From NCBI GenBank assembly GCA_009103225.1, contig RHPI01000385.1, forward strand, positions 556,480-610,622: a stretch of DNA of 54,143 nt, in the 5' to 3' direction. Every line of letters begins with the position of its first letter. Position 1 is the stretch's first letter. Positions 3,201 through 50,156 of this stretch are shown piece after piece. The position numbers and the translations under genes are program-made. Origin of the DNA: Chlorokybus atmophyticus (taxonomy: Eukaryota; Plantae; Mesostigma and Chlorokybus algae). The notes beneath the pieces are model-generated. The model did no database searches. It was not told the DNA's origin and saw only the letters and a program-made list of their open reading frames with translations.

Positions 3201-3392
3201 TGACTGTGCACAGCAAGCAGAGCATCATGCATTGCGCATGCATCCGTCGATAGCTATAGGTACCACAATCTCGGGCTGCACCAACACACAACAAACAACC
3301 CCATGACTGTGCACAGCAAGCAAGGCATCATGCATCGCGCATGCTTCCATTGATAGGTACCACAATCTCGGGCTGCACCAACACACAAACAG
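3201..3392 (+). repeat. ~103-bp tandem duplication
   Basis: tgactgtgcacagcaagca...ataggtaccacaatctcgggctgcaccaacacaca starts at 3201 and 3304. Confidence 0.9.
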
Positions 3393-7925: not shown

Positions 7926-10695
<2,770 letters not shown>

Positions 10696-13070
10696 GCACT
10701 TGTCCATTGACCTAGCTTGTTAATATGTAGCTGGTAGTTGATGTAACCAGTACATTTCGCTGGCAGCTAGCGCTGCTGCCTTACTCCATTGTAATGCACA
10801 CCTTAGTGCATCGCGGATTTTTGCCACCATTACCTACCTCTCACTGCACCACTGGTTGCTGTTCTTGGGCTTGCTTGCCTTAAAACCTGCTCTGTGACCA
10901 GAACCTCATTGCACCCATGCCCATGCTATTTTTGCAGGTGACAAATACATTTCGGTTTGCCGTGTAATTTTGGCTTAGCCATTGGCATCCATCCTGTGTA
11001 GGGTGACAGAACATGCTGGTGACCATTTGCGCTGAGCATTGTGGTGGTGATGGGTGGGTGCCATGAATAAACATCTGTCACACTTGAGCATTGCTTGCAT
11101 CTTGCGCAACATTGCACGCGTTTTGTGATCATTGTGTTAGGTCCATCGCAGCAAACATCCTGTTGATTACGCCTCTGTACATTCAGTCAACCGAAGCTTT
11201 GTCTCAATTTGTGCGATGGTTTGGCTGTACGGTTGTGGTGGTGGTACATACACTAAAGGTGTGCCTGCATTTCCCCCAGTCCTGAGAGATGCAATGTCTC
11301 CAGCAACTCGCACAAAGCAATTTTTGCAGTGTGTGAACTATGCCAGTGGAAAGGGAGGTACGTCTTGCCAGCCTTACATCGAATGTTAAAGGCTGGGGCC
11401 TCATTGTCCTGCCATTGACACCACATCCAACGGTGTCCATCAAGCCCTCTGCTGCGATCCATCAGTGTCTGCCTGGTTGCGCTGCATGAGCTACTCACGC
11501 GCTTGCGAACCAATTGTTCTTATACTGTGCAATGCAAGACACAGTAAAGTTGCATAATGCCTGCTGATGGCAGGACAAACTTGCCACCTACAGCTGTGAC
11601 CAGCTGTCACGTCGTGCGTGCAAACGGCAGCCACAGACCCATACACCTGCACGCTCGGATTATGCGGGCGGCGCGTGCATACAAGATGCACGCCTTTCTC
11701 TTGGCAGGTGCAGCACACGTGGTTGTGGCTCGAGAGGCACTTCTATCACAAACAAAGGCATATACAAAGCTCAGTCTAGGTGTCCATAGCTGGAGAGGCG
11801 CTCAACCACTGTACCACTGTCCGTGTTCTGCCTCTGTTGCTGTCTGGGAGGTATGGATCTTCGCGTTGATGCGCTCATTTGCGTGGTGGCGTATCATGCA
11901 ACCAGCGTTCACCACCACCCGTGCGTGCAGCACCCGATACCTATGCATGCATGAAAAGTCTCCTACTCACACACGGTCGCGTGCAAGCACAGTCTCGTGC
12001 TCGACTACACTGTTTCTCAAGTTGCTACATCTACATCCAAGCTCCATACCTAAGTGGTCATGTGGCAACTTCATCGCACCTCAAGGGTGCTCTGCAGGAA
12101 TGTGTGGTTTACGCCCTGTAGAGGCACTTGGTCTGGCAATGCACTTGGTTCTCACTGTGCAGCATACATGCGCTCTGATATTGGCGGCGCGTGAGGCGCG
12201 ATGTGTACACAAAGCGCAGGACACAATTGTGATGGGCGCGATATGTGTGGCGTGTGTAATGGGTGTGTACAGCAGGCCAAGTGACTACTGTAATGGGTGT
12301 GCGCGTCGCGGCGTGTGTACAAGGAATACAATGAGGGAATGTGCGCGCACATGCATGCGGAGTTGCACATCGCGTTGTATATACAGCGCGCTATGCACAC
12401 CTTATCCCCGTACATATCTGCATAGGCCCTGTAGGATCTGCCCCTGCGAACATGCGTGTTGTGCGGCCACCGGTGTAGACACTGCGTCACAAGCATCGGT
12501 CCAAATGCGGCAAGTAAACTTTGCCTCGTTCATGCCACCAACATACAACCACAAGCCCATACTCTGCAATATCACCATCAGCAGCATCAGCATCACAGCC
12601 GTTGCGTCCTAGTTCTCTGCCGTTGCTTGTTACACCCTTACTGCATCTGTCGTCAAGATTTCACACACTGCCTATGCACACAAGCGTTGGCTGTAAGAGG
12701 ATATGGCGTGTCACGCATGCATGTATACCACCTGTTACCCTCTCCTTCAGCTCAACACTCAGCACAGCACAGATGTCCAAGTTATATGACGTAAAGTACA
12801 CTTGCACCCGGCATTAATTGTGTGTGAGAGGGTCTTGCTACTACTACAGGCATGCGCATTGTGCAGAGCTATAAGAGCAACGTCTCTTTTTGTTGATGGG
12901 TTGGTTGCAAGTAACACGGCAGCAGAAACTAGAAGGGGGACATTCCCAAACAAGAGCAGCTGTCAGTTCCATCTGTGATGCTGAGTCAGGTTGTGCACAG
13001 GCCGCCAGAGGAAGAGGAAAGTATTGCTGCCTAGGTAGGAGTTCTTTCCCCGCTGTTCAGTAACAGTAGT

Positions 13071-14394
13071 TCAGCCATCTTCTTGCGATGCAAAGTGTGT
13101 TCCGTACTCGTTGATGTTGGTGGGTTTTTTTTGCGCCGCAGGGTGAATGTTGTTGGGCAACACAGGTTTCACTGGGCTCGCGCGAGCTGTGATGGAAGGC
13201 TTAATTTCGCCGCTCTCTGCGCAATCTCCCCGCTCGGTGTGTAGCCATGGACCCCGTCGGATGTGAGTGCTCTGCTGTGTCTCTGCATCATCGCTGGACT
13301 GTTCCACCAGGTGATCTGAGCGGTCATGTGCACGCAGTCGACGCCATGAGGGACTCGTACTAGACAGAGTGACATACTCTTCATAAGCGTGGTACTGGGA
13401 TGATTGCTTGTCTGGCTTTTTGCAGCTGAGCGCATCAGCTCGCGTACAAGATCAGGACGGTCGAGATCTGCTTCTTCACCATGAGTTGGACACTTGCAGG
13501 TCAGCTGGCGCAGACCATTGTACTGGATGTTGTCGATCTCAGAACTTGTTGGTCCTTGGTCAAGTGGTGCCACCAAGCCACCATCAACTATCCCGCGAGG
13601 CGAATGCGCAGTGGTAGGGGACCATCGTATAGGGCACAGCAGCGAATCAGGCATGCAAGCTTCAAGCAAGTTGCGAAGGGAACTTGCAGTGTAGCTGGCG
13701 CAGTGCAGCGCTGTGCTCAATAGAGTCAATCTCAGAAGCTGTGGTCCCTTGGTCAGATGGTGCCACCACGTAATCCTCAACTCTCACGCGCGGCGAATGC
13801 GCTTTCAATGAAAGAAGACCATTGCATAGGGGACAGCAGCTCTTCAGGCATGTAAGCTTGCGTGGGGAACATACACTTCAGCTGGTGCAGCACGTTGATG
13901 TTGTCGACCTCAGGAACTGTTGTCCCTTGGTGGGCAAGTGGTGCCACCAAGTAATTATCAGGATGCTCAAGATCTGCTTCGACGCCACGGGTCGGGAACA
14001 TGCAGTTCAGGTGGCGCATCGCACGGTGGTCAGTGTTGTCAACCTTTGGAATTGTTGTCCCTTGGTCAAGTGGTGCCACCATACCATTGTCAGGATGGTC
14101 GAGATCTGCTTCAACCCCGCGGAACGGGAACATGCAGTTCAGCTGGCTCAGCGCATTGTGCTTGATGTCGCCAATATCAGGAGGTATTGTCCCTTCAACC
14201 AGCAAGTCACCGTCAACTCTCACACGCGGCGAATGCTCGCCGCGTGTGAGAGTTGACGGAGACCATTGCATAGGGGACAGTAGCGCTTCATGCGTGTAAG
14301 CTTGCATGTGGTCCTCTAAACTGTCGCCAAACTGTCTTGCGGTTGCATGTAGCCCATGGCCAATCGAGCCCGAGCTTCTGCTAGACAATGTCAA
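13071..14394 (-). pseudogene. Decayed repeat-domain ORF of unknown family (five VAPLDQGTT..E[IV]DNI...LRQL.C.FP cores)
   Basis: Open 14394-13777, then frameshifts (+4 near 13805, +10 near 13665, another near 13410). Differences between cores are synonymous or 3n indels in the minus frame. Confidence 0.6.
14210..14259. repeat. Perfect 23-bp inverted repeat, 4-nt loop
   Basis: ccgtcaactctcacacgcggcga-atgc-tcgccgcgtgtgagagttgacgg. Confidence 0.95.
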
Positions 14395-16509
14395 TTGCCA
14401 AATCAGCGGCGTACCCAGCAGGTGTTGTGGCTGTCATGCGCATGCTTGTCGGTGGCGCAACGCATCATTGATACCGGCTTTCAGGTTCATACTTCATGAC
14501 TTTGGGCTGAGACTTACGGTCATCACATCGAGGTGTATCTCAATTACGCTGGTAGGACTCACATGTGACAGAAAATCGCTGGTTATGACTACTTCGGTAG
14601 ATGTATGGTAGTTGTGGCAGCTAAAGTGATTAAAACGGTTGTAGAGGCGCGGTAGGAGGGTATGTAAGTGTCCATGACTTGTATTACAGCTAGCTGAGCG
14701 CAAGCCCCTCGTTCTATTTGGAGTATACATCTACTTGAAGAGGCTTCAAGACTTAGTTGGTCGGTGCCTTGGTTGTATGCTTGCTTGGAGTGTGCACATC
14801 CTTGAATATGCTTGTGTATGAGCGCGTGCCACACCTTGTGAACGGACTTAGCCTCACCTTCCCGTGCACCACATGTCAATTGCAAGTAGAGAAGCCCGTG
14901 CTCGAATCTAGGTTGGCGTAAACACGCACTTGTTGTGCGTTTCGTATCATGTGTATGAGTATGTACTCTAGTGGGGCAGCTTCGGAAGGATCATGAGCTA
15001 GCACATGCGTGAAGAAAGCTACAACATGTGAAGGTGGAGAAGGAGCAGCATCATGAGGCCACGACGAGCGGGTGAACAACATCATCAAGCGACAACATCA
15101 TCAAGCGACAACTCAAAGTCATCGCACGTGCTATGCTTTCCGGTAGGCTGATCATCCTAATGACTATCAATAGTCAATGCCTACTGACATGTAGCTAGGT
15201 ATGCGCAAGGCTCTTTACGCATTAGCTGCGAGTATAGAGAAGGCATCGCTCGCTTGTTTTGTGACAGATTGATTGTTGGTAGGGCCTAGCGGCAGACACT
15301 AACTGGCTGCACCCGGTCACATAACAACGATAGTAACGTGCTGACCTTTAAACTCTTGGTGCTCGCATGGGAAGACTCGCTTCACCAACTGTAATGCTAG
15401 CATACGCCTGCCTAGCATATATGGCTGGTAGTGTGATGCTGGCAGTGACGCTGATTGGCTACATGCGTACGGTTCAGAGCAGCTCTAGGCACATACATGC
15501 ACCAACAGAAGCACGGCATAGGTTGTGGGTTGACTTGCATGCTATTTAAAATACCTTAATGCACCAACTGTCTAGCGAACTTTTGCAAGAAGGCTACTCA
15601 ACCGCTCTTTTGGGTATTGGTCAGCAGGATGTAATCCAATTGGGCGCTCCTTCAGACTGTGGTGTGTCAGTCTGGTGCTGGGAGCGTCGTGCTGCAGCAC
15701 TAGCCTCGAGAACAATAACTATCACTATGCATGGGCAATTTCGTCACGCATCTTTGTACACTTGAGAATTTTATTGCAACTCAGCATGCGCGATTCCCTC
15801 TTGCATCTTCTGTACACATCACTTTTCATTACCATAGCCGGCCATTTGGTTAAGTTATATATTATATATATAGTGTAACAGTTAAGTGGGAAGGGTTGTT
15901 GTCTGTGGGTGCGACAGTGCTTTAGTGTGGCTGAGTGTGCGCCACGCACTCACTCACACGCGCACACACGGTGTGTGTGCGCGTGGGTGCAAGCACACGT
16001 GCGCGTGCATGCGTGTGCGAGTGGGAGCATATGAAGGGTATATGCTGTTTCGTCGTTCTACGTACACTATCACATGCATAGCTATGCAGGTTGCAGGCAA
16101 CGCCACTCACAAATCACTCACAGCGTCACAACACAGTTACCATGCGTGCATTGCTGACCGGGGCAACAGGTGTTAGAGCTAGTCGTAGTTGATAGATAGC
16201 ATGCAGGCGCATGCCGTAGCCCGGTGGTTGAGTTGGTGAGTGTTTGTTGTATTCGTAACACTGCATATGCACGTGGCTTTGCATGTACAAATGCCTCTTT
16301 TGCCTCTTTTGTACACTGCTAGCGTACGACCACACGGGTTGCATTCACTACACTCTCTACTACCACTACCTTGCCTACCTCATGAGACATGCCAAGCAGT
16401 GCAAGGGGCATCTTATGTACACACCATGTCCTTGGCATCATGTGTACACAAGATACAACGGACATTACGCAAATGCAATTTTACGTGCACATGCAATATG
16501 TACAGAAGG

Positions 16510-16676
16510 TGATAGGCCGGAATGTGTGTGCAAGTGCATGTGTGTGTGCGCTTGTGCGCGCGTGTGTTTTGCGTGCGTGCGTGCGTGCGCGTGCGAGTGT
16601 GTGCGCGCGCGCGCATGAGTTTAAGTGCGTGTGCCTTGTCTATATAATATTGGGTGTTGTTGTCCAACAGGCGGCA

Positions 16677-16713
<37 letters not shown>

Positions 16714-16915
16714 GTATATATACACATATGTATATATATACATATGTATATACATATATATATATATATGTATATATACACATATGTATATATATACATA
16801 TGTATATACATATATATACACACATAAACACATACATAAATATAATGTGTGTATATGTATGTAATATATATACATGTATATTGTATGTAACATAAATACA
16901 TAATATACATGTTTA
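16510..16915. repeat. Compound (GT/GC)n then (TA/CA)n microsatellite
   Basis: gtgtgtgcgcgtgc tract followed by tatatatacatatgtatata repeats. This explains the low-complexity ORFs called here. Confidence 0.95.
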
Positions 16916-16919
16916 TATT

Positions 16920-19300
16920 AAGCTAATCATCGTGTGCTGCAGTTTTTGTATGGAACCGTGCTACGCTATCACCCAACAAATACCAACAGGTTTTGGTTTT
17001 GGGGCCTTTACAATTTGTTGTTGGCCATATATGGCACGAGTATGGAAGAATGCTATGCAGTTTGAAATTAAGTTGTCACAATCCGATTTGTAATTTTTAT
17101 TGTACAAGTATTAATAATGGTATAGTAGCCATCCGAGTAGTAGTCCGCCAATTTATTCTCAAACCTGACTTTTAATTGATGTGCAGGTATTTTCACCTGA
17201 TAACACCTAAGATTAAAATGATGCGCAACGTTAACGTGTATGCCATGCCGTTGATTAATATAGTTAGAATGGATTGGGTAAGCAACATTGACGTATGGAT
17301 TAAAATACATTGATATTAGCGATTCAATTACCGATACCAATTCCAATATCAAGATAATTGGCGGGGCAACCATGCCTAGAGCTAGCTAGAGCGGGGCACC
17401 GATTTGTGAGGTCAAATTCGGTTAACATGCATATTGGCCAGGCTGCTCAAACAACCATGCATTATAACGGCAAGTGCAGTTTTGGTCGCGAACATTTCCC
17501 AACATATGTGGCATGGAGTGGGGTTAGAGGCGGCGACGAGGGCGAGCACGGGAGCATAGGTGTCCTCTGGCGCGCCTGGCATATCTTAGTTCGTAAGGTT
17601 GGGCGTTGGCAAGATCTCCGCCTTCGTACAATAGTTTTGCAGCCTGGGGTTCCTCCATCAAGTTACAACCAGCGGCAACGCTATTCTTCAAACCGCTGAT
17701 GACGTCAGCGACTACCCACATGACGACAGAATCAAACGTCAAGCCGCTGCTGAAATTAGCGATCCTTTTTTGTTAAATTGGCCATCGATATGACATTCTT
17801 GGTCGCGGGCTTTGCCGTAAGACTTCATTCGCTTGGCAACTTATTAAAATACGAGATAGTCTATGAAGGTGTTTTTTCAACAACAGCCCTACTTAAAAAC
17901 TCTGTTGTAGTCGAAAATGAGAGTCTTTACCAGACACTACAAGAAGTGGCTATGCAGTTGCCCCTCAATGCGCCATTACCGTCAATGTCGGTGCTTTGAC
18001 TTTGATTAAGACATGTTCGTCATTGTGCGTTGTCTGTGCGGTAGCTATCACATGACACATGGCTTGCTGACGCCCTTGATATGGCAGACCCTTAAAACCA
18101 GTATCGACAGCACAGCTGTTAAGTGGGTTGGGGTGGGAGTGTGTTGCTTGTGCATAACCTTGAGTGTTATACATGAATCGTGTTGTACACACCATGTTTA
18201 TCATGTGAAGTGACTTTATACGATAAAAGTGCTTTGCGAGCAAGCCAGCAATAAACATAGCATTGCCTCGTTGCAAAGTTTGCAATGGCATGGGCATAAG
18301 TGTTGTTGCATGTGGGCATGGCTTGTTAAGTATCATGTTGAGCTCTATGCGTGGAATATAAATGCAACGAAAAAACTTCATTGACAGTTTAAATAATCAA
18401 CCGCCGATTGCTAGAGTAGAAAGCTAGAAGATATGTCGATTATTTAGCAATCGATTACAAAGTCCATTGCTGAAAGATAATTGACGATGGGCGGCTGCAT
18501 CAGCACAAGTAACTTGTTGGCTTGCAGGCATTGCTGACTCAGATTTAGACTCATCGGGAACAGCCCAGCCTTGCTGCATGTACAAGATGCAGCTTGATAT
18601 GATTGCTCTGCTAGCAGGGTGAGTCACGCAGCAGCTAACATTCTCTTCAAAGCTATCGTTAATGTTACTTCTACACCAAAATTGTTCTGTTCATACAACC
18701 ATACAAGTAGTAATTATATATCATATATATTTTGGTAAATAATATATAATCCATAAATGTTAAGGTATTGTCATGTTGTAGCTATAATTGTGTGATTATA
18801 ATTCACAGCATTAGCAGCACCACATGGCATTCAATGATGTAACAAGGTTTTTTTTGACCTTCGGGTAGACATATGCTATGAAAAGTCGTTATTACCTGAC
18901 CAGCTGTATGCAAAGGCTCATAACCGCATGCTGTAAATGACATATATATGTGTCATCAACAATGCTATAACATTTGATCTTACGAAAACATTGGCTTGTC
19001 AATTTTTATACATACTTACACGTGCGCTATTATCATTTCATCAACACTTCTTACTACAACAATGACATATAAATATCGTTGACAATTGATTATCACAGCT
19101 CTCTAATTAGTTGAGATTGCGTACAATACAGTTTGATAAGTTGTTTGTTGCTAGACGACAATACACCATAATTATAGTGTTCGTTACTTCACGCCATTAA
19201 CTAAGCAATAAATCCTTTGAGAAAAGCCCTTATGGATATAAATCAGCAAGCTATTAGCATATGAATGCATTGCAAGTCGTGTTACGTTTACTATGAAACA
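16920..19300. other. AT-rich segment with only stop-ridden ORF fragments; origin unknown
   Basis: Visibly more AT-rich than the flanks. No intact gene recognised. Confidence 0.4.
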
Positions 19301-19882
19301 CATTTTATGTGAGATGCAATGCATGGCATGCGCCTCTTATGCAGCTGCTGCAAGTTATGCTATGCGCTACTACAAGCATGCCTATATGATACAGTCCATG
19401 AACATATGTGTGCACTCTGTTCATGTGGACTGCATCACACAGTATCATACAGTCAGTATGCTCGTCTGAACGCTGGCATGCCCAATGCATGCATAGAAAT
19501 TTCCAAACTAACGCACATGGGTGACATCACATGTGCCATTGTGAACGTACGGTCGCAGGTGCAGGCAAATATTGCACTTTTTTTGGCTGCCGTCACCCAG
19601 TTAGGCCGCGCAAGCCCCAGTCACGTTTACCAACGTCATAACCGAGGCATGAGTAAGCTCAGACAGCCGATATCACTAAAGTCCTATCCTAACCGACTCT
19701 GATATCGGTAGCAGCATTCAGAACGAGGTTGCCTCTGGTTTGCGTGACGGCGATCGTTGACCGCTGTTAGGCTTTTGGAAGTTTCTGGCCCAGCGGAAGC
19801 TAGCGGAAAGCCTAGGCGGTGAGGCGGCGGCGGCGGTGGTGGTTGCTGTGGGCGGCGTTGGTTTTCGGAGCGTTGCGCAGCC

Positions 19883-21600
19883 ATGGACCGCTTTTCACAG
19901 AGATTCAGCCATGCCGGCAGCGTCGACTTCGACGCCCTTAAGAGCTTCCGCCCACTGTGAGTTTTCACCCAGAATCCCTGCACAGCAGGCTCAGTCGATT
20001 GCTTGCTGTGCGGGCGTTCGTTTGTGTGCTTGGTTATCGTATCATCTTGGTTATTTTTCCTGTTTGTCTCAAGCAACACTGCAATCTTTTGCCACGGGCG
20101 TCGCCACTTGGCCGTGTCATGCCAAAACCCTCCACAGCAAAAAACGAAATTATTACCGTAGTGCAGCGCAGGAGTGATGCTGTGTGTGAATTGTGCGTGC
20201 AGCAGCAGTATGGTCTTCTACAACGTCGTTGTTGTGGTTGTAGCTGTTACCGTAAGTGACCTAACGTCATTTGCGTGCACCTTAAACCAACAGGACACCT
20301 AGCGTGGTGAACCATTTGCGGGACGTGTACGCTGTGCTTGCGGTGTGCTTGTTGAGCGCTGCGGCCGGCACGTATGTGCACATGCTGTTGAACGTGGGCG
20401 GAGCTCTCACCCTCGTGGCGACTGTCGGCACCCTCGTATGGCTCGCAGCCACACCTCCAACACCCGATTACCAGGCACGTACTCCCCTTTTCAGAAACGC
20501 ACTGCACTGTCGTTTCTGAAGTTAGAGCGGTCGTGCCAATGTTCAAGTTTCAGACGCACAATTATCAGCATTTATACGCAACGGGCATGGAACGGTGATG
20601 CTGAGGTGTGCGTGTGCCTTTACTGCAGGCCAAGCGCACGTCGCTCCTTTTGGGCACAGCATTCCTCCAGGGCTGTTGTATCGGCCCTCTTGTTGAGCAA
20701 GTCATCAACATCGACCCAAGGTGAAATCATATCAATGACAGCATCCTTTGTGATACTTGGAGTCGCACATGGTGTTTTTCAGTCTGGGTTTCTGCTAATG
20801 CTCATGTGACTGCTTGCACTGCAGCATTGTTGTGACCGCCTTTTTGGGCACCATGGCCGTGTTTGCCTGTTTCACGGGTGCTGCCTGCTTCGCCAAGCGG
20901 AGGTCACTTCTGTACTTGGGCGGTATGTTCCAAGCACAGCATTAACTGCAATTCTTACCTTTACTTTGGCATGTGATTGCTCTCCGTATGATGTCGCGTA
21001 TGTTGAAACCTGTGCAACTGCACATCCTCTCACACACACACCCGTCTCAGGCATTTTGTCATCCGTTCTTGGCGTCTTTGCCATGCTGCGGTTTGCATCA
21101 CTGTTCTTTGGAGGCCGAGTGATGGTTTTTCAAGCAGAGGTGAGCTAACACTGGTGTACAGTGCCATTGTTGCATAAGCCCTCAATGAGCTCAACTCACC
21201 AACTCTTTTGCTTGGCAGTTGTACCTCGGGCTTCTGGTCTTCTGTGGTTACGTGTTGTACGACACTCAGGTATGGTTACTGCGGCAGTAGCACTCGCACC
21301 GTGCATGTGCCTGCGTTGACACGATTGCTGTGGACAGCTCATGATTGAGAAGGCGCATCGCGGTGACCGGGATGTTGTCATGCACGCACTGGAGCTCTTT
21401 GTCGACTTCATCGCCATCTTCGTGCGGCTACTCATCATCCTGGTATTTTCTCTTCTTTCTTTTTATTAGCATAGTGCGCAAGCTGACGTAGCATCTTCGC
21501 GCTGTACAACCAGTCACTCGTTGCATGTGCTGTGCAGGCTTCAAAGGAGGAGAAGGACAAGCGCGAGAAGAGCCGCCGGGGCAACACCACTCGCCGCTAG
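19883..21600 (+). CDS. BI1: Bax inhibitor-1 (TMBIM6); exons 19883-19956, 20294-20474, 20629-20720, 20825-20922, 21051-21139, 21219-21269, 21338-21442, 21538-21600
   Basis: [80 protein letters not shown], basic tail. Intron 2 needs a GC donor. Confidence 0.95.
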
Positions 21601-30639: not shown

Positions 30640-33600
30640 TCAGGCGCTCTGGCTGCTGCTGCTGCTGCTGCTGTCATCATCGGAGTCAGAGCTGTTGGGT
30701 CTGCTGCCTCGACGCCGCGTCGTGGACTCTGTTTTGCCTTTACTTCGCTTGTGCCTCTTGGACTCCTTCTCCTCGCGCTTCTTCTTTGACTTGGAGTCTT
30801 TCCTCTTCTTCTCGCGATGGCGCCGTCGCCTTTCCTTGTCCCTCTCCCTCTCCTTGTCTCTCTCCCGCTTGCGCTTCTTCTTGCGCTCGCGCCTGCGCTC
30901 TTCCTCGTGTTCCTCCAGCTCCTGTAACCGCCTCCGCTCGCGCTCAATCACAGACTCACCTCTCCCACCCTCAACAAGCTGCGCCAGTGGATCAGCTACC
31001 ACTTGACCACCATTATCAACTCGCTCCCCACGCCCTGTGTCCACGGGCGTGCTGGCCTGCCTGCTGCTCTGGCGCCGCACCTCGTCGCCATCCACAGCAG
31101 CATCGTCACTGTTGTCTAAGTATGCTGGCCTGGCCGGTCCAATCACCGTCCTTGGACCGGCAAAGGCTGCGGGGGTAGCAGTAGCAGTTGCAGGAGGCAG
31201 TTGCAATGCAATTGTCTTCGCGGCAGCGCTCCGCAAAGCAAATGCTGGGCGCAGCGAGTCCGTGTCCCGAGCGCCCCCGACCTCCTCCTCCTTCTTGTCC
31301 TCATCCGCAACGCCCATGTCGGCAAAGAAGTCCGCCGCAGCAAGCCGGTTGAGGGCCGCTGTGGCCGCAGCCGCGCCGACCGGGTTCTGCGCCGTATCTG
31401 CTGAGGACGGGCGGGGCTCTGCTTCTGGTGGTGCGTCCACGCCCTCGACCTCATCCTCGTCGGAGTCATCCTCAAAGATGGCCTTGAAGAGGTCGATGGG
31501 CTTCTCCACGTACGTCTCCGGGGGCTGCTGATCTTCCTCCTCGTGCTCTGCCACGCTTTCCTGCGCGGCCGCTGCTTGCTTTCTCTCCCCAGCAAGGGCA
31601 GGCCAGGTCGGGGCGTGCGTGGCCTGCGGTAGAGCGAGCATGGCCGCTGCGGTGGGTGCCTCGGGCGCGGCGGAGGACAGCAGCACCAGGGAGTCCATCT
31701 TGCTGGCTTTGGGCGGGGGCGGCTTCTGCCCCGCGTACGGGTCGGCCAGACCGAACCGCTTGCAGAGGAGGTGTTCGGGACGCCACGGATGCGACTCGCG
31801 CGTCATCCCTCGCTTGGATCCCGCTGCCGGCTTGCTCGACAGGGACTCGGACCCCAAAGAAAAGCGTGAGGCGACGGCGGCTGCGAATGAGGCGGCCGCC
31901 GCGCCCGCGGGCGCGAGCGTCGAGCGCGACTGGCTGGCGGCTTCGGCAAACGGCCCCTGCTTCAGAGCCCTCGCCGTGCGCTCAAACTCGTCGCGCTCGC
32001 GGACGCGCTCTTCTTGCGTTTGCAGACTCTGCGGCTGCGGTGTTGAACGCATCAGCAGGTTGCTCACGGCTACATGTGCAAGAGGGGTGCATGCATGCGC
32101 CATGAACATGTATCACTACGCTATCCACACAGCTCCTTGAGCAGGCAAGTGCCCATGCCATTACCTATACAAAGACAAGCAGCGCATGCACAGGGCAGAG
32201 GACCTCTGCGATGGGGCAACCAGTGGAGATCTGCCATGCATATGTACCTGTGGTTTGCGCAGGCCTCCCACGGTGGCTTGCTGCATGTAGTCCTCGTAGC
32301 GCGCCTGCTTGTCCGCATCCGCCTGGAACGGCTTGCTGTCGGAGCTGCCCCCGGAACCATACCCCGCCGTGAACGTGCCGGCGAGCGCCGCCTGCAGCCG
32401 CTGCCGGTCGTCCTCGGGAATGAGCTCAAACACCATGCCGGGTTTCACTGACGGGGGACCAGGTAGCACTGCGGGCTGCTCTCCCAGCATGTGCGCTCGC
32501 TGGTTGGCGTCAAGCCGAATGCTACGCGATTGTTGCTGCCGCTGCTGTTGTTCGTCGCGCTTCTGCTTCTCCCGCAGCAGCTGGCTCAGCCTGTACTGGT
32601 AGTAAACCTGGCCGGGACCATCGTCAAGCAAGAAGCAGAACTTGGGGTCGCCCCGCTGCCGCTCCTTGACCATCGCCTCGAACTGCGGGCCATTCTTCGC
32701 GACGTACGCCGCCAGAGACTCGATGGTCTTGCGCAGGTCCGACCCCTCCGGCGGCACGTCCTTCTCCGCGATGGTGACGGCGTCTTGCGCGAGGTCGTCC
32801 GCGGTCGCGCCTTGGAAGGCCGTCGCCATCGGGGCCTCGAAGCGGTGCACGGGCTCGTAGTCGGTCGGCACCTGCGGCGGGGGATACGCCTCGGCCGCGT
32901 CTTCCACCTCTCGCACGTCCGACACCTTGAAGCAGGCGAGTATGTTGGACGCGTCCAGGTTGAGAAAGGCGGCGGCGGTGTCCGGCCTGGCTGCTGCGGC
33001 GCGGCTCTCTTCATCGAGGCTTGCCGGGATGTCATAGTGCGACGCGTCTTCGCGCACGTACACGTCCTCATCCTCGTCTCCCTCGCCCTCGAGGACACCC
33101 ACCCCGAATCCAGAGCCCGTCTTGTGTGCGTGGGGGCGGAACATGCTTCCCCCAAAGCGGTGTCCGTGCGTGCGCGTGGCGGAGGGCCTGAGCTGTCGCA
33201 CGCGCTCGTCGCGGCGGGCACGGAACTCGGGCGCGTCGCGGTAGGGGTCGTGTCCGAGGCCGTGGCGGTCGCTTTTGGGCTTGAGCACGTACGACGGCGT
33301 CGCTTGCGCCAGGTTTAGCTCCGGCAGGTCGCTCGCGTCCTCCTCCATGGCCACCGCATCCACAGCACCATCGTCATTCAGGGCCTCCGGGGGCGGTGCA
33401 GAGGGCCCGTACACCTTGCGTCCTGAAGGCTCCACGCGCATGCCCGTCGTTGTGGTGGTGTGCTTGGCTAGGGCGTCTGCGGCGCGTCTGGCGGCACGCA
33501 CGAGGTCGTCCGCGCCTTTGCGTGGACCGAGCTTGCGACCATGGCGCCAGCCCATGCGCCGAAGGAGCTTGAGTCCCAGGGACTCCGTCACGGGCACGAT

Positions 33601-34993
33601 GACCTCGTCGGGGACCAGGTTGGGGATGGCGTCGGGGCGCGGCTGCAGCTCACCAGTGGACTCCTTCTGCGCCTGCCTGCGCGCGAGATCCGCCGCGGCC
33701 GTACCAAACGTGTCGAACTCCTGCTTGGCCGTCAGCCTCGACCCGTGCAGCTCCGCCTTCTCCTCCTCGTCCATAAAGTCCTCCGCTGCGCGCACCCATT
33801 GGACACAGCACACTCAGTGCAGAACAGGACCACAACTACACTATCTTGTGTGTGTGGAGGAAAGCATGCGTTGATGACACAAGTGTAGCACGCACCTTGT
33901 TGCTTTTTCTGCCCTGCACGGTCGCTGCGGGACGACTTGAAGGTGGAGGGCGCCCATCCCTCCTTGGAGCCGACCGTGTTGAAGTATCCCGCAGAGAAGC
34001 CGCCCGTGAACGCACCATGGAAGCGTCGTTTGCCATTCTCGTCGAGCACCTCCTGCTGCCATGGGGGAACATCGTGCCGCGCCGCGCCGCTCACCACCAG
34101 CGCCTTGCGCGCACGTCGACCCACCTGATGACAAAAGAGAGACACAGCAGTACGTGAACGGTTGGTCGTGGAAAAAAAATAAAAGCCTGAAGTATTGCAT
34201 CAAAACGTTATGGAACTGATGCAGCGAAGGGGTTCACTAAGACCCGGGCGTGCGTGTATGAATTGCACTGATGATGGGCGGTTGTGCTTTGCATGCAGCG
34301 TGTGAATTCAAGATGTTGTCGTCACAACTGCATAGATGTTATGGACAGTGCCTGCCCAATGATGGTAGAAATAATGATGCGGACGACGCGACCATGCAAC
34401 TTGATGGCGTGTGGCAGCTGTGCGTGACACTGTACAGCTTGAGCATGTTGGCAAATCCATGCAAGCAAAGCCAGACTGACGACGTTGTGCGCGATTGGGA
34501 CAGGTACAGACGCGAATCTAGCGTTTTCATCCATAATATGAATTGTGCGTCGAGTTTGTCAACTGACACGAGCTGAGTTCGCAAAGGGATTGCAGCCACA
34601 TCCCTGCTTGCTGCCTTCAAACAATGCATGCATGCACGAACAAAGTGAAGTACACATACAAGTGTGGGACTTGTGGGGGGGGACATGCGTATGAATGACA
34701 TGTTGATACATGCATACCCATGTATGAGACGCGTAGGTAGATAGGCTGAGATAACGATGGACAACAAGGCATGTACGAGAGATGTGCTTAATTCTGGCAT
34801 CTGGTTGATCCATTCGGACGCATGATTGCACGAGATATGATGCTAGTGCGCGAGCGTGCGTCTCAGTAACGGCTGCGGCCATCTGCGTGCAGCTCTAGGG
34901 TTGAACGCATTAGAGACTTGCCTCTGATACGTTGACTAGAGGCGTTCCGACTGCAATGCAGCTCTCCTGCTCGTCGTCATCGCTGTCCGCCAT
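30640..34993 (-). CDS. TGH: G-patch domain protein 1 / TOUGH; exons 34993-34931, 34124-33896, 33785-32248, ~32028-30640
   Basis: [32 protein letters not shown]-patch [15 protein letters not shown] domain [44 protein letters not shown]-rich tail. The last acceptor is ambiguous (32028 or 32034). Confidence 0.93.
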
Positions 34994-39349: not shown

Positions 39350-42300
39350 CAGTCTACCCCGTTACAAGAATCACGTTTATCCTGGAGCTTTTCATGCCAC
39401 TAACGGGGTTATTCTTTTTACGTTTAAAAGAATATATATTCAGTTAACGTTAAGAGAATACATATTCTTTTAGTGGGGGTCCTGCCAGAAAAGCGCATGA
39501 GCGTTCATAAGAATAAATATGCTATCAACGAAGTGTGTGCATTTCACATGTATATGATCATCATAGTGAGTTTTACGTACATCAAGGAATTGAATAACAC
39601 ACAATGCAACCTGGTGTTGTGTGACAACATGCATGCTTCAAGTGTTATGATACAACAAGTTTATGTGCATGTACAATGGCGCGCACGCATGCGTAAAATA
39701 TGTAATGAATTTGCTTGAGTGTGTACATGAGTATATTGCTTTGCGTATGTGTGCAAGAGCAAGCAGCATGCATCTGCGAGGCCATCACCACCAGTACAAG
39801 CATTGCAGACTGCACTCGTGCATGCAAGGTATGCACGCTACTCTAACTCGACCGGCTCATCGACTGTGCCACAAGTGCCACTAGTGCTAGCATCATGTCC
39901 AGAAGCACCCGCAGTGAAAAAGTCCTGTATGGTGGTCTGACGGCCAGCGTCAAACAGCTGATGCTTGATGACCACGTTGCGTAGCTGCCGTAAGGTGAGC
40001 TGATGATGCTCTGAGATGGGGCAGTCATTGGTGGCGATGAAGGCCTCCACACCATCCAAGAACCTCATGCACTCTGCCACTGTGATGCGTGGGGGTGATT
40101 CCTCATAATCATCATCTACAACACAAGGCATTGTAAGTGCCCACTCATGCACATACACGCACACGTACTGCAATGAGATCCCTCACCGTCAGCCTCATCA
40201 GGCTCAGCGGTGGCCCCCTCAACGCCTCCGACGCTTTGAAGGATGTCATCATCGCTCTGCCCGGCTTCGGTTGGGAGGGTGTCATCGACGTGAACGAACT
40301 CAGCTGGGGAGAGCATCTCCGCACGTGGAATGGGGAGACGCTGCATGATGTCCCCGATCTTCTGTACAACAGCCTGCTCGCGTGCGTCAGCGTCGGGAGT
40401 TGGCGCGTGCCAAGCAGAGGGGGTGATGCCGCTCTTCCTCCAGCAATTCGAGATGGTGATTGCGGTGAGCTCCCCGTACGCCTCGCGACACCATATGATT
40501 GCCTCGCTCAACTGCACCTTCACCGTGCGCAAGTCGGTTGTTGGGTCGGCCTCATATTGCTGCAGCAAGTACGCAACAAGCTTGCGCTTGTACCTGCCAC
40601 GACCAAAGTGAGAAGCATTACAAACTCTGACAAACAAGGGGGGCCGGGGGGGTGGTTTCCCCCACACACCCCACCCCACCCCACCCCCCACCCCACCCCA
40701 AATGTTTTTACAAGTTTTTTACATTCGGACTCAGTTTGTAATCAGAGCAACGCAGCAGCGTATGTGGCCTTGAACGCAGCAATGCCTGCGTCAAGAGGTT
40801 GAACCTTGCTGGTTGTGTTGGGAGGCAGGAACAGACACTTCACAGTGTCCACCTGCAGCGTCTTGAACCCTTTCTCTATGCCCGCGACCCCGTACTTGCA
40901 GGCGTGGGTAGAAGAGTTGTCGAGCAACAACAACACATTGCGCTTCTGCAGCTTCATCTGAAAAGCGAAGTTGCGGAGCCAGCGACTGAAGATCTGCATG
41001 AGACAACGTCTGGTCATACACACGAACTTACAATTACACATATGGACTTGCGGTTTGCACTAACAGACTTGCCAACTAGCAATACTGTCAAACACCTTAC
41101 CTCTGCATTTATCCAAGCCTTCTTGTTGTTCTCGTACTCCACACCGATGCGGATGGGAGTCCATGTGCTCCCAAAAGTACTAGGTCTTTTGGACGTACCA
41201 ATCAGCAAAAGGGGATACTTCCCGGAGCCGTCGGCATTCACACACAATGCTATTGTGAACCTATCCTTCTCTCTCTTCCCCCCTCTCGCTTCTTCACTTG
41301 CAGTGACCAATGTGCGGCGTGGACGAGACCGGTAGAACACCCCGCTCTCATCCATGTTGAAGGTGTTGGTAGCGCCGTAGTCCTCAAGAATCTCTGGCAA
41401 GTCAGCTTGGGCCATGTCGACCCCTTCTTCATCTGCATCGTTGGCTTCCCCGTGCAATGGTTTAGCGGAGATGCCATGATGCTTCTTGAACCGATTCACC
41501 CACCCATGTGATGCATTGAAGTCCTCTATGTCCAACTTGCTAGCAAAGTCCTTACCCTTCTCTATCAATATCGCGTCTGTGATGGTGGCATTGCGAGCCC
41601 GAGCTTGTACAAACCATGCATACAATGCATCCTCCAACTTGGGATGTGCTGCAAGCCGGATGTGCTTGGTACTTGCAGCGAAATTACCGCCCTGAGCTAG
41701 CGTCTCAACTTTCTTATCACGGCCAGTCAGCAACTTGGACAATGCACTCTGTTTAATTTCCAATTTCAACTTGGATTTGACAATAGCAATGAAGTTTGCT
41801 TGCCTAACGTTGGTGTTCTCGCACAACTCATTATACAACTCTAACATGCGCTTCTTGTCCTTGAGAGTGATGTTGCTACGCTAAGCGGGCTGTGGTGCAG
41901 ACATGATGACCTACAAAACGCACAGAATGGCCTTAGTGTTCACATAAACAGTCACAACAATGCACACATACACACGCGCATGTGCACAACACACACCTTA
42001 GCACAAGCCCTCCAAAGCTTGAAGCAGCTGTTCCCATCATCAAGGCATCTACTGCTACCTATCTACACCTTTGCCCCCGCCGCCGCCAACCCTCGCGCCG
42101 CCGCCGCCGCATCTTGCCGCGCCTCCAGGGGATAACCAGTGCCTCTGCAGCTGACGTGGCGGCTTAAGGCACAGAAGCACTTGCATGGGCACAAGGGCAC
42201 AAGATCAAGTGCTTGCTTGTGCCCTTGCGCACAGCACTGCTACCCCAATAAGAGCATATCACCATTGGGATTTTCATGCGGTAACATTAGTCTTATTACG

Positions 42301-44199: not shown

Positions 44200-46475
44200 T
44201 GCTAAATGTTATAGGTTGTAAAAAGTACATGTATAGGCGGCTACATGTAGTTGGTACGATCAGCTTAACCTTTAAAGTTACGGGAGTTACGAGAGTTACG
44301 GGAGTTATGACAGTTATGGTCAACCCTGGTCAACTTTAACTTTGACCGTTGACTTTGACCATTGACTAGTGTTGACTATGACCAGAGTTGACTAGAGTTG
44401 ACTAGTGCTTAGTAGCATAATATATAAGACATTGTATACTGGTCAATACAGTGGGTCGCACATTGTCTCTATAGTTGGCGTGCTTGCTGCACTTGTCCTT
44501 AGTGTGTGCACACTTGTATGTAGGAGGCAAATACACACACACTAGGCGCATCACTAGTTCTCAACAGGTTACGGGCCCACACTCGCTTGTGTGATCGCTT
44601 GTGCTAGTGAGAGAAAGTGTTGAGCATAGGCGCCTACTAGTGGAGTGTTTTTGGGGAGAGGTGAGTTGTACTATTGTGTAGCAAGCAATGGCTGACACAG
44701 ATAGGATGCCCATTGAGTCCCTTGATTTGCACAACTACGCTTCATGGTCACTAAAGATGAAGTTGGTGCTGATCCGCAAGAAGCTCTGGAGTTTTGTCGA
44801 CCCCACCTGCTCCACATCATTGCGGCCAAGAACAGGTGACACTAGTACCTGGACAGAGAACTCACAATCAGCTTTTGCGCTGATAGGCTTGCACGTCAAA
44901 GACTTTCATCTACTCCTTATTGCGGATTGCAAAACTGGACGTGAGGCGTGGGAGGTCTTCGACACCCTTTTCAAGACCAATAGCAACTCGCGCAAGCTGC
45001 AGCTGAGACGCAAGCTAACACTTCTGAAGATGGAGCACAAAGAGCCAATCCAGAAGTACATCTCGCGTGCAAGGGAGCTTTGGCAAGACCTTGCAGCAGT
45101 GGGCCATGATGTGAAGGAAGAGGAGGTGATGTGGGCAGTCTTAGCTGGCTTAGGAAAGAGCTTTGCTACGCTAGTGACTGTGTTGGAGTCCTCAGATGTG
45201 GTTTTGAAGTTTGCTAATGTAGTGCCTAAGCTGCTAGCTGTGGAAGGCAAGTTGGATGTGCAGGAGATAGAGAATGGTGGAGAATCTTTCGCATTTGCTG
45301 CCTCATCTTCTCAACACACACGAAGCAGGAGCAAAGCAGGTGGTGGGAAGCCATCATGTGACAAAGAGTGTCACTACTGCAAGATGAAGGGCCACTTCAT
45401 TCGCGTGTGCCAGGATAGGATCCACAATGAGGCAACCAACGAGGAGCACGCCACGATGGCGATTGCTTTCTAGCATTGGTGAGGACTTCAAGCAGTTGCA
45501 GTGGATGGTGTTCGTCCGTCCACTCCCACTGCAAGGGCGCGTGAAGGACATGCGTAGATGGAGGTCGCAGACAACAGGGTTTGTGAGAGTTACTGCTAGC
45601 TTATGAGTAGTTGCTGGTGTTGAGCTCCATACACTAGAGGTTGCATTGATGTGGAGTTGTTTTTTGGTAGCACACAGGTGTGCGGTACTGGTTATAACAC
45701 TTCAATTGATTGGCATGCAAGGACTGAGTTGTATAGCTAGCTAACAGGAGATGGGAGGGGTGCTTTCATTGATAGAAGGGTTTGATCAACCGTTGCACGG
45801 CCTACACTCTGGTACAGCATTGCTAAGGTAGAGAACTCAGTGTAGTTTATAGCATAATTTGCCATTGAGGGAGTCTTTGAAACCACCTGAGCAAGGTTTG
45901 GCGTGGCGTGGTGGAACCTAATGCGACAACTATAAGGAGGAAACAAGGAGTATTGGAACCTTGTCGTCCTTTTGGCAGCACAAGGAGAAGGATGGTGTCA
46001 TGGAGACAAGCATCAAGTCCGTGGGAGCAACACATCCATGGGAGTGTTCAAAGAAGTAACTTAATGTGGGTAAGCTTGCTATAAGATCTTGGAGTTCAAG
46101 GTCAAGCTGCTCGCATGGGAGTGTTAAATGTTATAGGTTGTAGAAAGTACATGTATAGCCGGCGCCTACATGTAGTTGGTACGATCAGCTTAACCTTTAT
46201 AATTACGGGAGTTACGAGAGTTACGGGAGTTATGGCAGTTATGGTCAACCATGGTCAACTTTAACTTTGACCGTTGACTTTGACCATTGACCAGAGTTGA
46301 CTAGAGTTGATTAGTGCTTAGTAGCATAGTATATAAGACATTGTATACTGCTTAATTCAGAGGGTCGCACATTGTCTCTATAGTTGGCGTGCTTGCTGCA
46401 CTTGTCTTTAGTGTGTGCACACTTTTATGTAGGAGGCAAATACACACACACTAGGCGCATCACTAGTTCTCAACA
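44200..46475 (+). mobile_element. Non-autonomous gag-only Copia B, inserted antisense into the RNase H of A
   Basis: LTRs 44200-44566 and 46122-46475 (TG...CA), TSD TCCTC (44195-99 and 46476-80), PBS ggttacgggccca 44567-79, PPT atgggag. Confidence 0.95.
44688..45473 (+). CDS. Copia Gag of element B (261 aa, intact, CCHC knuckle)
   Basis: NYASWSLKMKLVL, RKLQLRRKL, PIQKYISRARELWQDL, CHYCKMKGHFIRVC. Homologous to the Gag of A. Confidence 0.9.
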   Translation: MADTDRMPIESLDLHNYASWSLKMKLVLIRKKLWSFVDPTCSTSLRPRTGDTSTWTENSQSAFALIGLHVKDFHLLLIADCKTGREAWEVFDTLFKTNSNSRKLQLRRKLTLLKMEHKEPIQKYISRARELWQDLAAVGHDVKEEEVMWAVLAGLGKSFATLVTVLESSDVVLKFANVVPKLLAVEGKLDVQEIENGGESFAFAASSSQHTRSRSKAGGGKPSCDKECHYCKMKGHFIRVCQDRIHNEATNEEHATMAIAF

Positions 46476-49400
46476 TCCTCCGTGTTGCAGTACTTGAACG
46501 CCACCTCCTTCCTTGCCACACGCTCGCGCACGAAGTGGTGAATCACGTCAATATGCTTTGATCGTACTGAAGCAGTTGGATGCTTTAGCAGCTTAATTGC
46601 GCCTTGGTTGTCGCAGTTTATGCTGATGCAGCTTGCAGGGTAGCATAAGTCCATCTTCAGCTTCTTCAACCACAATGCCTCCTTCAATGCCGATGAGGCA
46701 GCCATGTACTCCGCCTCTGCTGCCGAGGCAGCCACGGTAGGTTGCAGCTTACTGTTCCAGCTAATAATTCCACCATTTATTAAGAACGCGTAGCCAGTAG
46801 TTGACCTCCTCGTGTCGGGATCCCCAGCGTCACAGTAGCCCTCTAACTTCGTGTCTCCAGCACCAGCTCCCTCTCCAAAGTGAATGCCCACGCTTGTGCT
46901 CCCCATCACATAACGCAGCAACTCCTTTGCAGCTCTCCAATGCTTCATGGGTGCTGACATGTATCGTGCAAGCATTCCCACAGCATGTGCAATGTCTGGT
47001 CTAGTGCTCACGGACATGTAAAGCATGCTCCCAACCAACTCACTGTAAGGGAACTTGCTCCTGTTGAGGTGCTCTGTCTCACTCATTGCTCGCTGCAGCT
47101 TGGCTCCCACGGACATAGGTATTACCTTGCCTTTGGCGTCTCCCATTCCAAACTTCTCCACAATCCTTTGCGCCATCAACTCCTGGCTAATCTTGGCTGT
47201 CTTATTATCCATGTTTCTCTCGATCACCATGCTCAGAAACAGCTTTGCCTCTCCCGAGTCCCTCATGTCGAAAGCAGATTTGAGAGATGTCTTCACCTCC
47301 TCCAAGTCCTTCAGCTTCTTCGCAGCAGCCATGATGTCGTCGGCGTACACCAACAGCCAAATTTTCTTCTCCTTGTGCGTGAAGAGTCAAGGATCAGCTT
47401 CTGAAGGTGTGAGCCAGTCTTCTCCAACTCTTTGGTGAGCCGGATGTGTCATACTGTTGGCGCTTGCTTGAGCCCGTACAATGCCTTTACAAGTCTGCAA
47501 GCAGTGCCTGGTCCTCCCTCCTCATAGCCCTTGGGTTGCTGCATGTAGATCTCCTCCTCCAACTCTTCGTAGAAGAATGCAGTCTTCACATCCAAGTGGT
47601 GTAGCTCCCAATCCTCAGCTACCACAAGTGCAAACATGGTGCGAAAGGTTACAAGCTTACTAGCAGGGGCGAACACCTCATGAAGTCAATGCCCTCTTGC
47701 TGCAAGTACCCCTTCACCACCAATCGTGCCTTGTATCTCTCGATGCGGCCTTGCCCATCGCGCTTGATCTTGTACACCCACTTCACCGGTAAGGGCTTCA
47801 CTTCAGGTGGAAACTTCTCCAGCCTCCATGTGCCGTTGGCGTGCAAGGATGCTATCTCCTCGTCCGTCGCATGCTGCCATAGCTCTGTGTTTGGGGCTGT
47901 CATTGCCTCCTTATATGTGGTAGGCTCCTCCTCCTTGGTTAATGCTACCAAGCTTTTGAAGCGTCCTTCCTCAGGTCTCGTGCTCCTCAGCATGTACCTG
48001 GGCTCCTCATGGACCTCCACAGCTTCTTCCTCCGATGCTTGTTGCTGAGACTAATGGTTAGTATCTGTAGTTGGGTCCTCGGGGTGCGGAATGTTGTTTA
48101 TTGGTGACTCCTCCATGTGGGGGTCCTCCTCCTCCACGACAACAACAACCTCTGGGACAGCACCTGTGATGCCTTCCTTCATAAACATCACATCCCTTCT
48201 CACCACCACCTCGTTGTCTTCCAGCAGCACGCGGTAGGCCTTTGAGTTGAACTCATAGCCAATAAACACGCCCTTTTTGCTCTTGGGCGCCAGCTTCTTT
48301 TGCAGTTGCTTGGGGATGAAAACATATGTTGAGCTGACAACCCTCAACATGGAGATGTCTGGCCTTTGCTTGGTGAAAAGCTCCCACGGTGTCTTTGCTT
48401 GAGATGCTTCCGGTGAGCGATCGCGCATATACGCTGCAGTAAGCAGTGCATCGCCCCACCTATGGTCTTGCATTTTTACGTCCACCAGCATTGCTCTTAC
48501 TTTCTCCAACAGGGTTCTGTTCAGCCTCTTAGATGCTCCGTTCTGCTGCGGGGTGTAGGGTGCCGTGTATTGGTGCGTGATCTCGTGCTCGGCCAACCAG
48601 GTCTTCAATTCCTTGCTGATGTATTCTCCACCTCTATCTGACCGCACTGTCACCACCTTCTCTTCTGACTATTTCTCCATCAGGGTAAGTACCTTCTTCA
48701 GCTGTGCCGACACTTCCGACTTCAAATCCAAGGGCACCACCACCGCAACCTTGCTGTAGTCATCCAAGAATGTATAAAAATACCTGTACCCTTTAGCAGT
48801 TGCAACAGGCAGTGGTCCGCATACATCAGAGTGTACCAGTTGCAGAGGCTTGGTTGTCACACTCCGTGATGCTGGGAATGGCAATTTTCGTTGCTTCGCC
48901 AGCACACAGGGTTCACACAACACCTCTTGCATGGTTCTGAACTCCTTCGGCTTAATGTTGATGCCATCCACCATGTTTTCCTTCACTAGCCTGGTGAGGT
49001 TATCGTAGCGGAGACGTCCAAGTCATCGACGCCACAGCGCTGCGGACTCTTTGGTCGATGCAGTATACGCTTGCACTCCAGCAAGCTTCACATGATACTC
49101 TCCTCCTCCATAATCTTTGGCAATCATGTACAGGCCCCATCAAACTGTACACGCCTCAGGTCTCCCTCAAATACAGTCCTAGCCCCCAGCTCTTGCAGCA
49201 GCACGCACTGAAACTAGACTAACAACCGCTCGGGGAACATGTAACACATTGCGCAAGTACACTTGCCTCTCAGCTCCGTTTACAGTGCAATCGAGGTGGC
49301 TGTCCCCCATGCCAATGGCTGCTTCCTCACTGCTCCCAAATGTGACCATGACAGGCTTGTCAATAAGCCTGTAGCTCTGGAACTGCTCCTTGTCAAAGGT

Positions 49401-50156
49401 GAGTTGCTTGTTGCACCCGGAGTCCAGCACCCAAGCAGTAGCAGATCTTGACAATGCAGCCATAAACGCCATAGGTTTCTCACCCTTGTTGTCGTGTCCG
49501 TCACCCTCCGCCTTCTCTTGTTCCGCAAACCACAGCCGGCACTCCATCTTGAAGTGGCCCTTCTTCCCACAATAATGACACTTGAGGGTCTTCTTGTAGT
49601 CCTTCCCCTTCCTGCTGCCACCGTTGTACGAGCCTCCTCCTCCACCCTGACTTCCGTTCTTTGAGCTTGAAGCAGCAAACGCCACCGAATCTGCTTCATC
49701 CCTTCTCCTGCCTGTCTTCTCTTCTTGTTGAAGCAGCATGGGCAGCACCACATTGAGCTTGAGTTCCTCCCTTTGCGTCTCAAGCACGGTCACCACCATG
49801 TCGTACTCTTCAGGAAGATTGGAGAGGATAGCCCAAATCAGCTCCACCTCCTTCACCTCGTGGCCTATCGAAGTGAGGTCTTTCCACAGCTCCCTTGCTC
49901 GTCCCGCGTACTTGGAGATAGGCTCCGCTGACTCCTTTTTCAGCGCGTTCAGCTACCTTCTTAGCTGCAGCTTCCTTGCAATGTTGCTTGCTTTGAATGT
50001 GTCTGCCAACTTTTGCCACGCTTTCTTGGCATGCTCACACTCATCAAGCATTACAAGATGGTGATCTTTCACGTTAAAGCATAGCAATGCAAGTGCCTTT
50101 TCACTCTTCTCCAACCACACACTCTGCGTACCCTCTACAGGTGCGTCACCATTGAG

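Follow-up and report, generated by a model that had tools for sequence, protein, structure and literature searches.

The window analysed here, a 54,143-nt stretch of DNA from the streptophyte alga Chlorokybus atmophyticus, carries a degenerate tandem array at 13445-14307 on the minus strand. Tandem Repeats Finder assigned it a period of 132 nt (score 356), a repeat search returned families with five copies spaced 132-193 nt apart, and a self-blastn of the array gave E 3e-38, with a DNA identity of 66-76% from unit to unit. The repetition is far beyond chance.

Several other features were recognised in the window. A multi-exon gene for a cytosolic-type HSP90 occupies 8523-10695 on the plus strand (Pfam HSP90 is matched by its ORFs at 8523-9122 and, with E 2e-163, at 9553-10695); it is convergent with the putative pseudogene described below, whose 3′ end lies ∼2.3 kb away. 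About 1 kb past the last recognisable fragment of that putative pseudogene is a TA/TG-rich microsatellite of ∼230 nt (16650-16901), with a 56-nt higher-order period and palindromic self-complementarity. A large, GC-rich gene at 30640-33813 (minus strand; GC3 0.72-0.82) has G-patch and Surp matches, and its relatives are GPATCH1-like proteins of 900-960 aa (G-patch, Surp and PF07713) at ∼30% identity, with no Chlorokybus protein among those recovered, probably owing to a length filter. A fragment of a pogo/Tc5-type transposase (HTH_Tnp_Tc5 and the start of DDE_1) is present at 41014-41847 on the minus strand. Pieces of a Copia-type LTR retrotransposon are spread over both strands of 44688-49856 and look nested or fragmented: gag at 44688-45473 (plus), RVT_2 at 46463-47353 (minus), integrase/SH3 at 48051-48656 (minus) and a gag tail/Pol_BBD at 49179-49856 (minus). 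The plus-strand gag is flanked by 9-nt tandem arrays of the AGTTACGGG type at 44276-44316 and 46203-46241. Short tandem duplications occur at 1987-2112 and 3201-3388 (60-nt × 2.1 and 103-nt × 1.9), and scanning the window for Rfam families and tRNAs returned no match.

The repeat units were delimited by translating the three minus-strand frames and anchoring each unit on its conserved start. Five cores of ∼30 codons lie within 13484-14199, all on the minus strand and all built on the motif V-A-P-L-D-Q-G-T-T..E-[IV]-D-N-I..H..L-R-Q-L-x-C-x-F-P, and the spacers are linkers of two types, X and Y. Read along the minus strand, Y linker 1 (14200-14304) leads into core 1 (14122-14199), the most divergent core, which has lost 12 nt from its start; X linker 1 (14080-14121), core 2 (13990-14079), X linker 2 (13948-13989) and core 3 (13861-13947) follow. 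Compared with its sister Y linkers, Y linker 2 (13767-13860, comprising 13813-13860 plus 13767-13799) has lost 8 nt at ∼13800-13812, a deletion that shifts the frame and so produces a stop at 13777-13779. Beyond core 4 (13674-13766), Y linker 3 (13574-13673, of which 13574-13663 is Y sequence) bears a 10-nt insertion at ∼13664-13673, by which the frame is shifted and two stops are brought in. Core 5 (13484-13573) and X linker 3 (13445-13483) complete the array, and the latter runs on to 13412 into the segment 'PDLVRELMRSAAKSQ'.

This anatomy agrees well with a sequence-only reading made beforehand, which had placed the five minus-strand cores within a few bases of these limits, had given the same core motif and had recognised two types of linker (three X and three Y in our delimitation). 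That reading had also confined the frameshifts to the stretches between cores. Within the array this is correct, as both frame changes fall in Y linkers and there are none elsewhere in it; further breaks occur outside the array.

Three of the cores lie in a 205-aa ORF, open from 13777 to 14394, with an ATG in frame at 14307. A splice-like interval, with a GTGAGA donor at 13787 and a phase-compatible AG at 13661-13660, would skip core 4 together with both frameshifts of the array. Structure prediction of this ORF with AlphaFold2 gave a pLDDT of 31 and no confident fold, which is weak evidence because the input was a single sequence, and is at most consistent with disorder. Pieces of the array and of the locus were searched and counted separately throughout, not as a joined or read-through product.

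The coding signal in the array was assessed in several ways. With the cores aligned as untranslated DNA, their indels were 12, 3, 9 (or 6 + 3) and 3 nt long. Every one is a multiple of three, as had been claimed, which is hard to get by chance and supports past maintenance of the frame. The accompanying claim that core differences are synonymous third-position changes did not survive counting: pairwise differences at the first, second and third codon positions numbered 77, 60 and 89 in the cores (93, 89 and 124 over all modules), and the pooled Nei-Gojobori pN/pS was 0.67, with single core pairs ranging from 0.31 to 2.0 and Y linkers near 1. There was no in-phase stop in 279 codons. Neutral simulations started from the unit consensus had a mean pN/pS of 0.89, against which the observed value has a P of about 0.05-0.08; zero stops occurred in 4-8% of the simulated runs (P about 0.04-0.08), and the third-position share was exceeded in 2-4% of them (P about 0.02-0.04). 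Every one of these statistical signals, taken singly, is thus only marginal. The proposed past selection on a protein is favoured by the frame-keeping indels and, marginally, by the lack of in-phase stops, the pN/pS and the third-position share.

Length of open frame was of little help, since a 144-aa antisense ORF (plus strand, 13822-14256) also spans the array. The phase-tracked antisense frame contains just 2-3 stops in about 287 codons; it is the expected mirror of a stop-poor sense frame and not a second gene. Over array and tail (the tail being the homologous segment that follows the array, described below), the phase-tracked GC1, GC2 and GC3 were 0.65, 0.44 and 0.54. The excess of GC1 over GC2 is coding-like and was seen in the proposed phase only, while the GC3 of 0.54 equals the regional background, compared with 0.72-0.82 in three neighbouring coding ORFs. 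The combined signals read as fossil coding sequence rather than as a gene under current constraint.

An alignment of the repeat units was turned into a profile and searched against 1.84 billion protein representatives. It had one match (E 2e-18), a protein of 1298 aa referred to here as P0001, which a cluster look-up identified as EukProt EP00898_P009011, an uncharacterised predicted protein of Chlorokybus atmophyticus (jgi/Chlat1/9110; Chrsp97S08382). With hmmsearch, the unit profile found one full Y-core in P0001 (residues 458-521, 73 bits, profile positions 2-65) and half a Y at residues 425-446. It follows that the intact gene has the module once and that the five-fold array belongs to the window copy alone. 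The suggestion of a repeat-domain family consequently falls away, given that the sole relative has the module once and that the 1.84 billion representatives hold no other carrier of the repeat. In the collections searched, P0001 was the sole protein with these cores, so the window locus itself was apparently not annotated as a gene.

P0001 itself has few points of comparison. Pfam (E up to 1) assigned it to no family, a PDB sequence search (E up to 1) gave no match, and a word search recovered no homologue besides the protein itself. ESM Atlas returned weak leads only, namely clusters of disordered fungal proteins, most of them without a Pfam family. Literature searching found its gene identifier in no paper, and a broader search gave nothing specific. 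Disorder-promoting residues make up 56% of P0001 and the hydrophobic fraction is 0.19-0.28 in each 100-residue block, a composition from which we consider the protein probably largely disordered. Searches from the window side were equally negative: Pfam gave no family for either ORF of the locus, a word-index search with the 205-aa ORF (covering proteins of 113-359 aa) no match, and ESM Atlas with the same ORF no usable match, and an exact look-up of ten ORFs from the window retrieved no entry. The earlier statement that the motif is not a recognised domain accordingly stands in Pfam, PDB sequences and ESM Atlas. Of the two outcomes that the reading had set against itself, a match to a known domain and a dN/dS near 1 with no homologues or expression, the first did not occur in these searches, and for the second one homologue was recovered with the unit profile.

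The resemblance to P0001 extends well beyond the repeat. By tblastn, the protein is collinear with the minus strand of window positions 15716-13080, identity reaching 67-80%. Residues 237-302 match 15713-15422, residues 346-516 match 14433-13990, residues 453-528 match 13675-13448, residues 883-902 match 13471-13412 (75% identity, the 'PDLVRELMRSAAKSQ' segment that follows X linker 3), residues 896-945 match 13421-13299 and residues 1061-1134 match 13301-13080 (67% identity, E 1e-24). Upstream, a putative pseudo-exon fragment that we call S1 (15422-15716, minus strand) corresponds to P0001 ∼236-302; one frame covers residues 237-251 at 80% identity and a second covers 247-302, with in-frame stops and an intron-like gap after the switch. 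A further minus-strand fragment, S2 (15218-15400), matches P0001 ∼196-242 with E 0.006 in a tblastn confined to 10700-20500. Being downstream of S1, it is out of order with respect to P0001, as the product of a local duplication or rearrangement. The array-bearing exon begins with a degenerate half-Y and an 'ARQFG' segment (14305-14433, minus strand; collinear with P0001 ∼346-457), directly downstream of a TGA at 14434-14436. On the other side of the array, the tail (13080-13421, minus strand) combines residues 896-945 and 1061-1134 in a frame different from that of the array, and homology ends at 13030-13085 with a 1-nt shift relative to P0001. Residues 1-165, 303-345, 529-882, 946-1060 and 1141-1298 of P0001 have no counterpart in the window. 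The collinear match of both flanks supports descent of the array from a host protein-coding sequence.

The linkers contain some information about the order in which this arrangement may have arisen. The start of the X linker aligns with P0001 516-528 and its end with 883-890, continuing into 'VRELMRS.AKSQ'; X thus spans the junction at which P0001 ∼529-882 is missing, and the 132-nt core + X duplications must post-date that junction. Identity is 38-64% among the window cores and 35-50% between them and the P0001 core, from which it follows that the amplification is old and not much younger than the split of the two copies.

At least five frame changes or stops are needed to read the window copy against P0001. 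The break at ∼15650-15670 switches frame within a few bases, inside homology to a contiguous part of P0001, and is followed by 'SLKERPIGLH.A..YPKER' in the other frame; given this position, no intron can explain it. The two array frameshifts were scored against sister units of the same locus and are therefore independent of P0001. At ∼13400-13421 the best-conserved tail leaves the array frame, and at 13071-13085 a 1-nt shift relative to P0001 leads to a stop at 13071-13073, the shifted frame stopping again 16 codons on. These last two breaks could, in principle, reflect differences in the P0001 gene model. Intron-like gaps are retained in the window copy, for example within 15422-15600, and favour a duplicate that arose at the DNA level over a retrocopy. 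Considered as a possible member of a P0001 family, the window locus has both the unit similarity and the collinear similarity outside the repeat, and lacks an intact reading frame on account of its breaks, missing segments and out-of-order fragment.

Taken together, we consider it likely that the minus strand of window 13030-15716 holds a pseudogene of the Chlorokybus-specific orphan gene jgi/Chlat1/9110, namely a paralogue that is incomplete and rearranged and has decayed. P0001 would then be encoded elsewhere in the same genome, and the window copy would presumably have no present-day function. The best reading is that the module was amplified in tandem before or during decay of this copy. 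The proposed sequence of events begins with P0001 ∼529-882 being lost from the window copy, or never having been present in it, whereby the core would have come to lie directly before the '...PDLVRELMRS' segment and the X linker would have arisen. Tandem duplication of 132-nt core + X units and of Y + core units of ∼185-190 nt would then have produced five cores. For a time the frame of the array may have been kept, leaving core indels in multiples of three and no in-phase stops. Once this constraint lapsed, frameshifts, stops and the rearrangement of segments would have built up and third-position GC would have drifted to background. The earlier proposal that this is the best candidate for a novel system has become unlikely, as a locus that is partial, rearranged and frame-broken, with GC3 at background, does not look like a working one.

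The locus could nonetheless still be a working gene, a shortened and repeat-expanded paralogue whose breaks are spliced out or whose three-core ORF of 176-205 aa is translated. The open frame with its ATG, the in-frame core indels, the pN/pS of 0.67 and the phase-compatible splice that would remove core 4 and both array frameshifts all fit such a gene, which would encode a multivalent version of a Y-core motif protein. That splice would, however, mend neither the upstream break nor the frame change before the tail. The former is not explicable as an intron, and between the array and the 67%-identity tail, which differ in frame, there is no space for an intron of normal size. With GC3 at background, marginal selection statistics and no such protein in the collections searched, we regard a working gene as unlikely. 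A more specific version, in which a Chlorokybus-specific family of disordered proteins would have the Y-core (∼60 residues) as its functional binding motif and the window locus would be an expressed, spliced, multivalent variant, is more doubtful again. Long-read assemblies are prone to indel errors of the kind that would make an intact gene appear broken, and two of the breaks would suit this explanation, one (∼13415) adjoining an A5 run and the other (∼13080) being a single base. The array breaks, by contrast, are indels of 8 and 10 nt rather than homopolymer slips; stops, missing segments and a misplaced S2 are not errors of a sequencing type, and background GC3 is independent of indel errors. 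An intact gene obscured by mis-assembly is accordingly very improbable.

The slightest chance of all attaches to a non-coding satellite, or an internal repeat or cargo of a transposable element (TE), with an accidental reading frame. Units only 66-76% identical, a pN/pS not far from 1 and an antisense ORF that is open across the array as well would suit this explanation, as would the TE fragments elsewhere in the window, at 41-50 kb. It is difficult to reconcile with units and flanks that are both homologous and collinear to a 1298-aa predicted host protein, with core indels that keep the frame, or with an excess of GC1 over GC2 confined to the proposed phase. Terminal repeats, inverted or direct, do not flank the locus within 10700-18500, there is no second copy of it in the 54-kb window, and no TE domain was found near the array (Pfam is empty in the locus ORFs and the nearest TE domains are those at 41-50 kb). 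Of the earlier alternatives of a host gene or TE cargo, a host origin is supported by the homology to P0001; the cargo alternative has no support, with neither terminal repeats around the locus nor another copy in the window. A variant of our preferred explanation, a decayed paralogue, concerns only the relationship of the two copies: the window copy could be a diverged or decayed orthologue instead, should P0001 and the window prove to be from two Chlorokybus species.

For annotation, the value of a decayed paralogue is that the region can be marked as a Chlat1_9110-related pseudogene rather than a new repeat-protein system. It also adds one more taxonomically restricted gene, here in an early-diverging streptophyte alga, that would have been duplicated, internally amplified and then decayed. 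Both copies share the signature V-A-P-L-D ... E-[VI]-[DN]-N-[IL]-x-H-x-A-L-x-Q-L-x-C-x-[FY]-P-T. Its conservation between two old copies marks the most likely important part of the 1298-aa protein, a mildly useful lead.

Compared directly with P0001, the window copy has the Y linker, core and post-core segment, the 'PDLVRELMRS.AKSQ' and 'SPSW.RL.AHD' segments and the C-terminal block 'IRRGPWLHT.RG...KPSITAR...NINEYGTHF' (67% identity), with the order of all of them preserved. It differs in having five cores where P0001 has one, and in lacking about 165-236 residues at the N terminus, 354 + 115 internally and 160 at the C terminus; P0001 reads through in a single frame, whereas the window copy has at least five frame changes and one misplaced segment. 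Some likeness exists to the tandem arrays of short motifs in intrinsically disordered proteins, in that the window units are ∼44-63 residues long, with a conserved short motif and variable spacers, the window ORF has a pLDDT of 31 (single-sequence AlphaFold2, a weak indication) and P0001 is 56% disorder-promoting and 19-28% hydrophobic. Unlike those arrays, the window array as assembled is not translatable as one chain. A further parallel is with unprocessed (duplicated) pseudogenes that contain internal tandem duplications, in that the window copy represents part of a multi-exon gene, with intron-like gaps kept, frameshifts, stops and rearranged fragments present, and codon-usage bias lost. 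It departs from the usual unprocessed pseudogene in two respects: its parent is a lineage-specific orphan, and its amplified module bears traces of the frame having been kept for some time after amplification.
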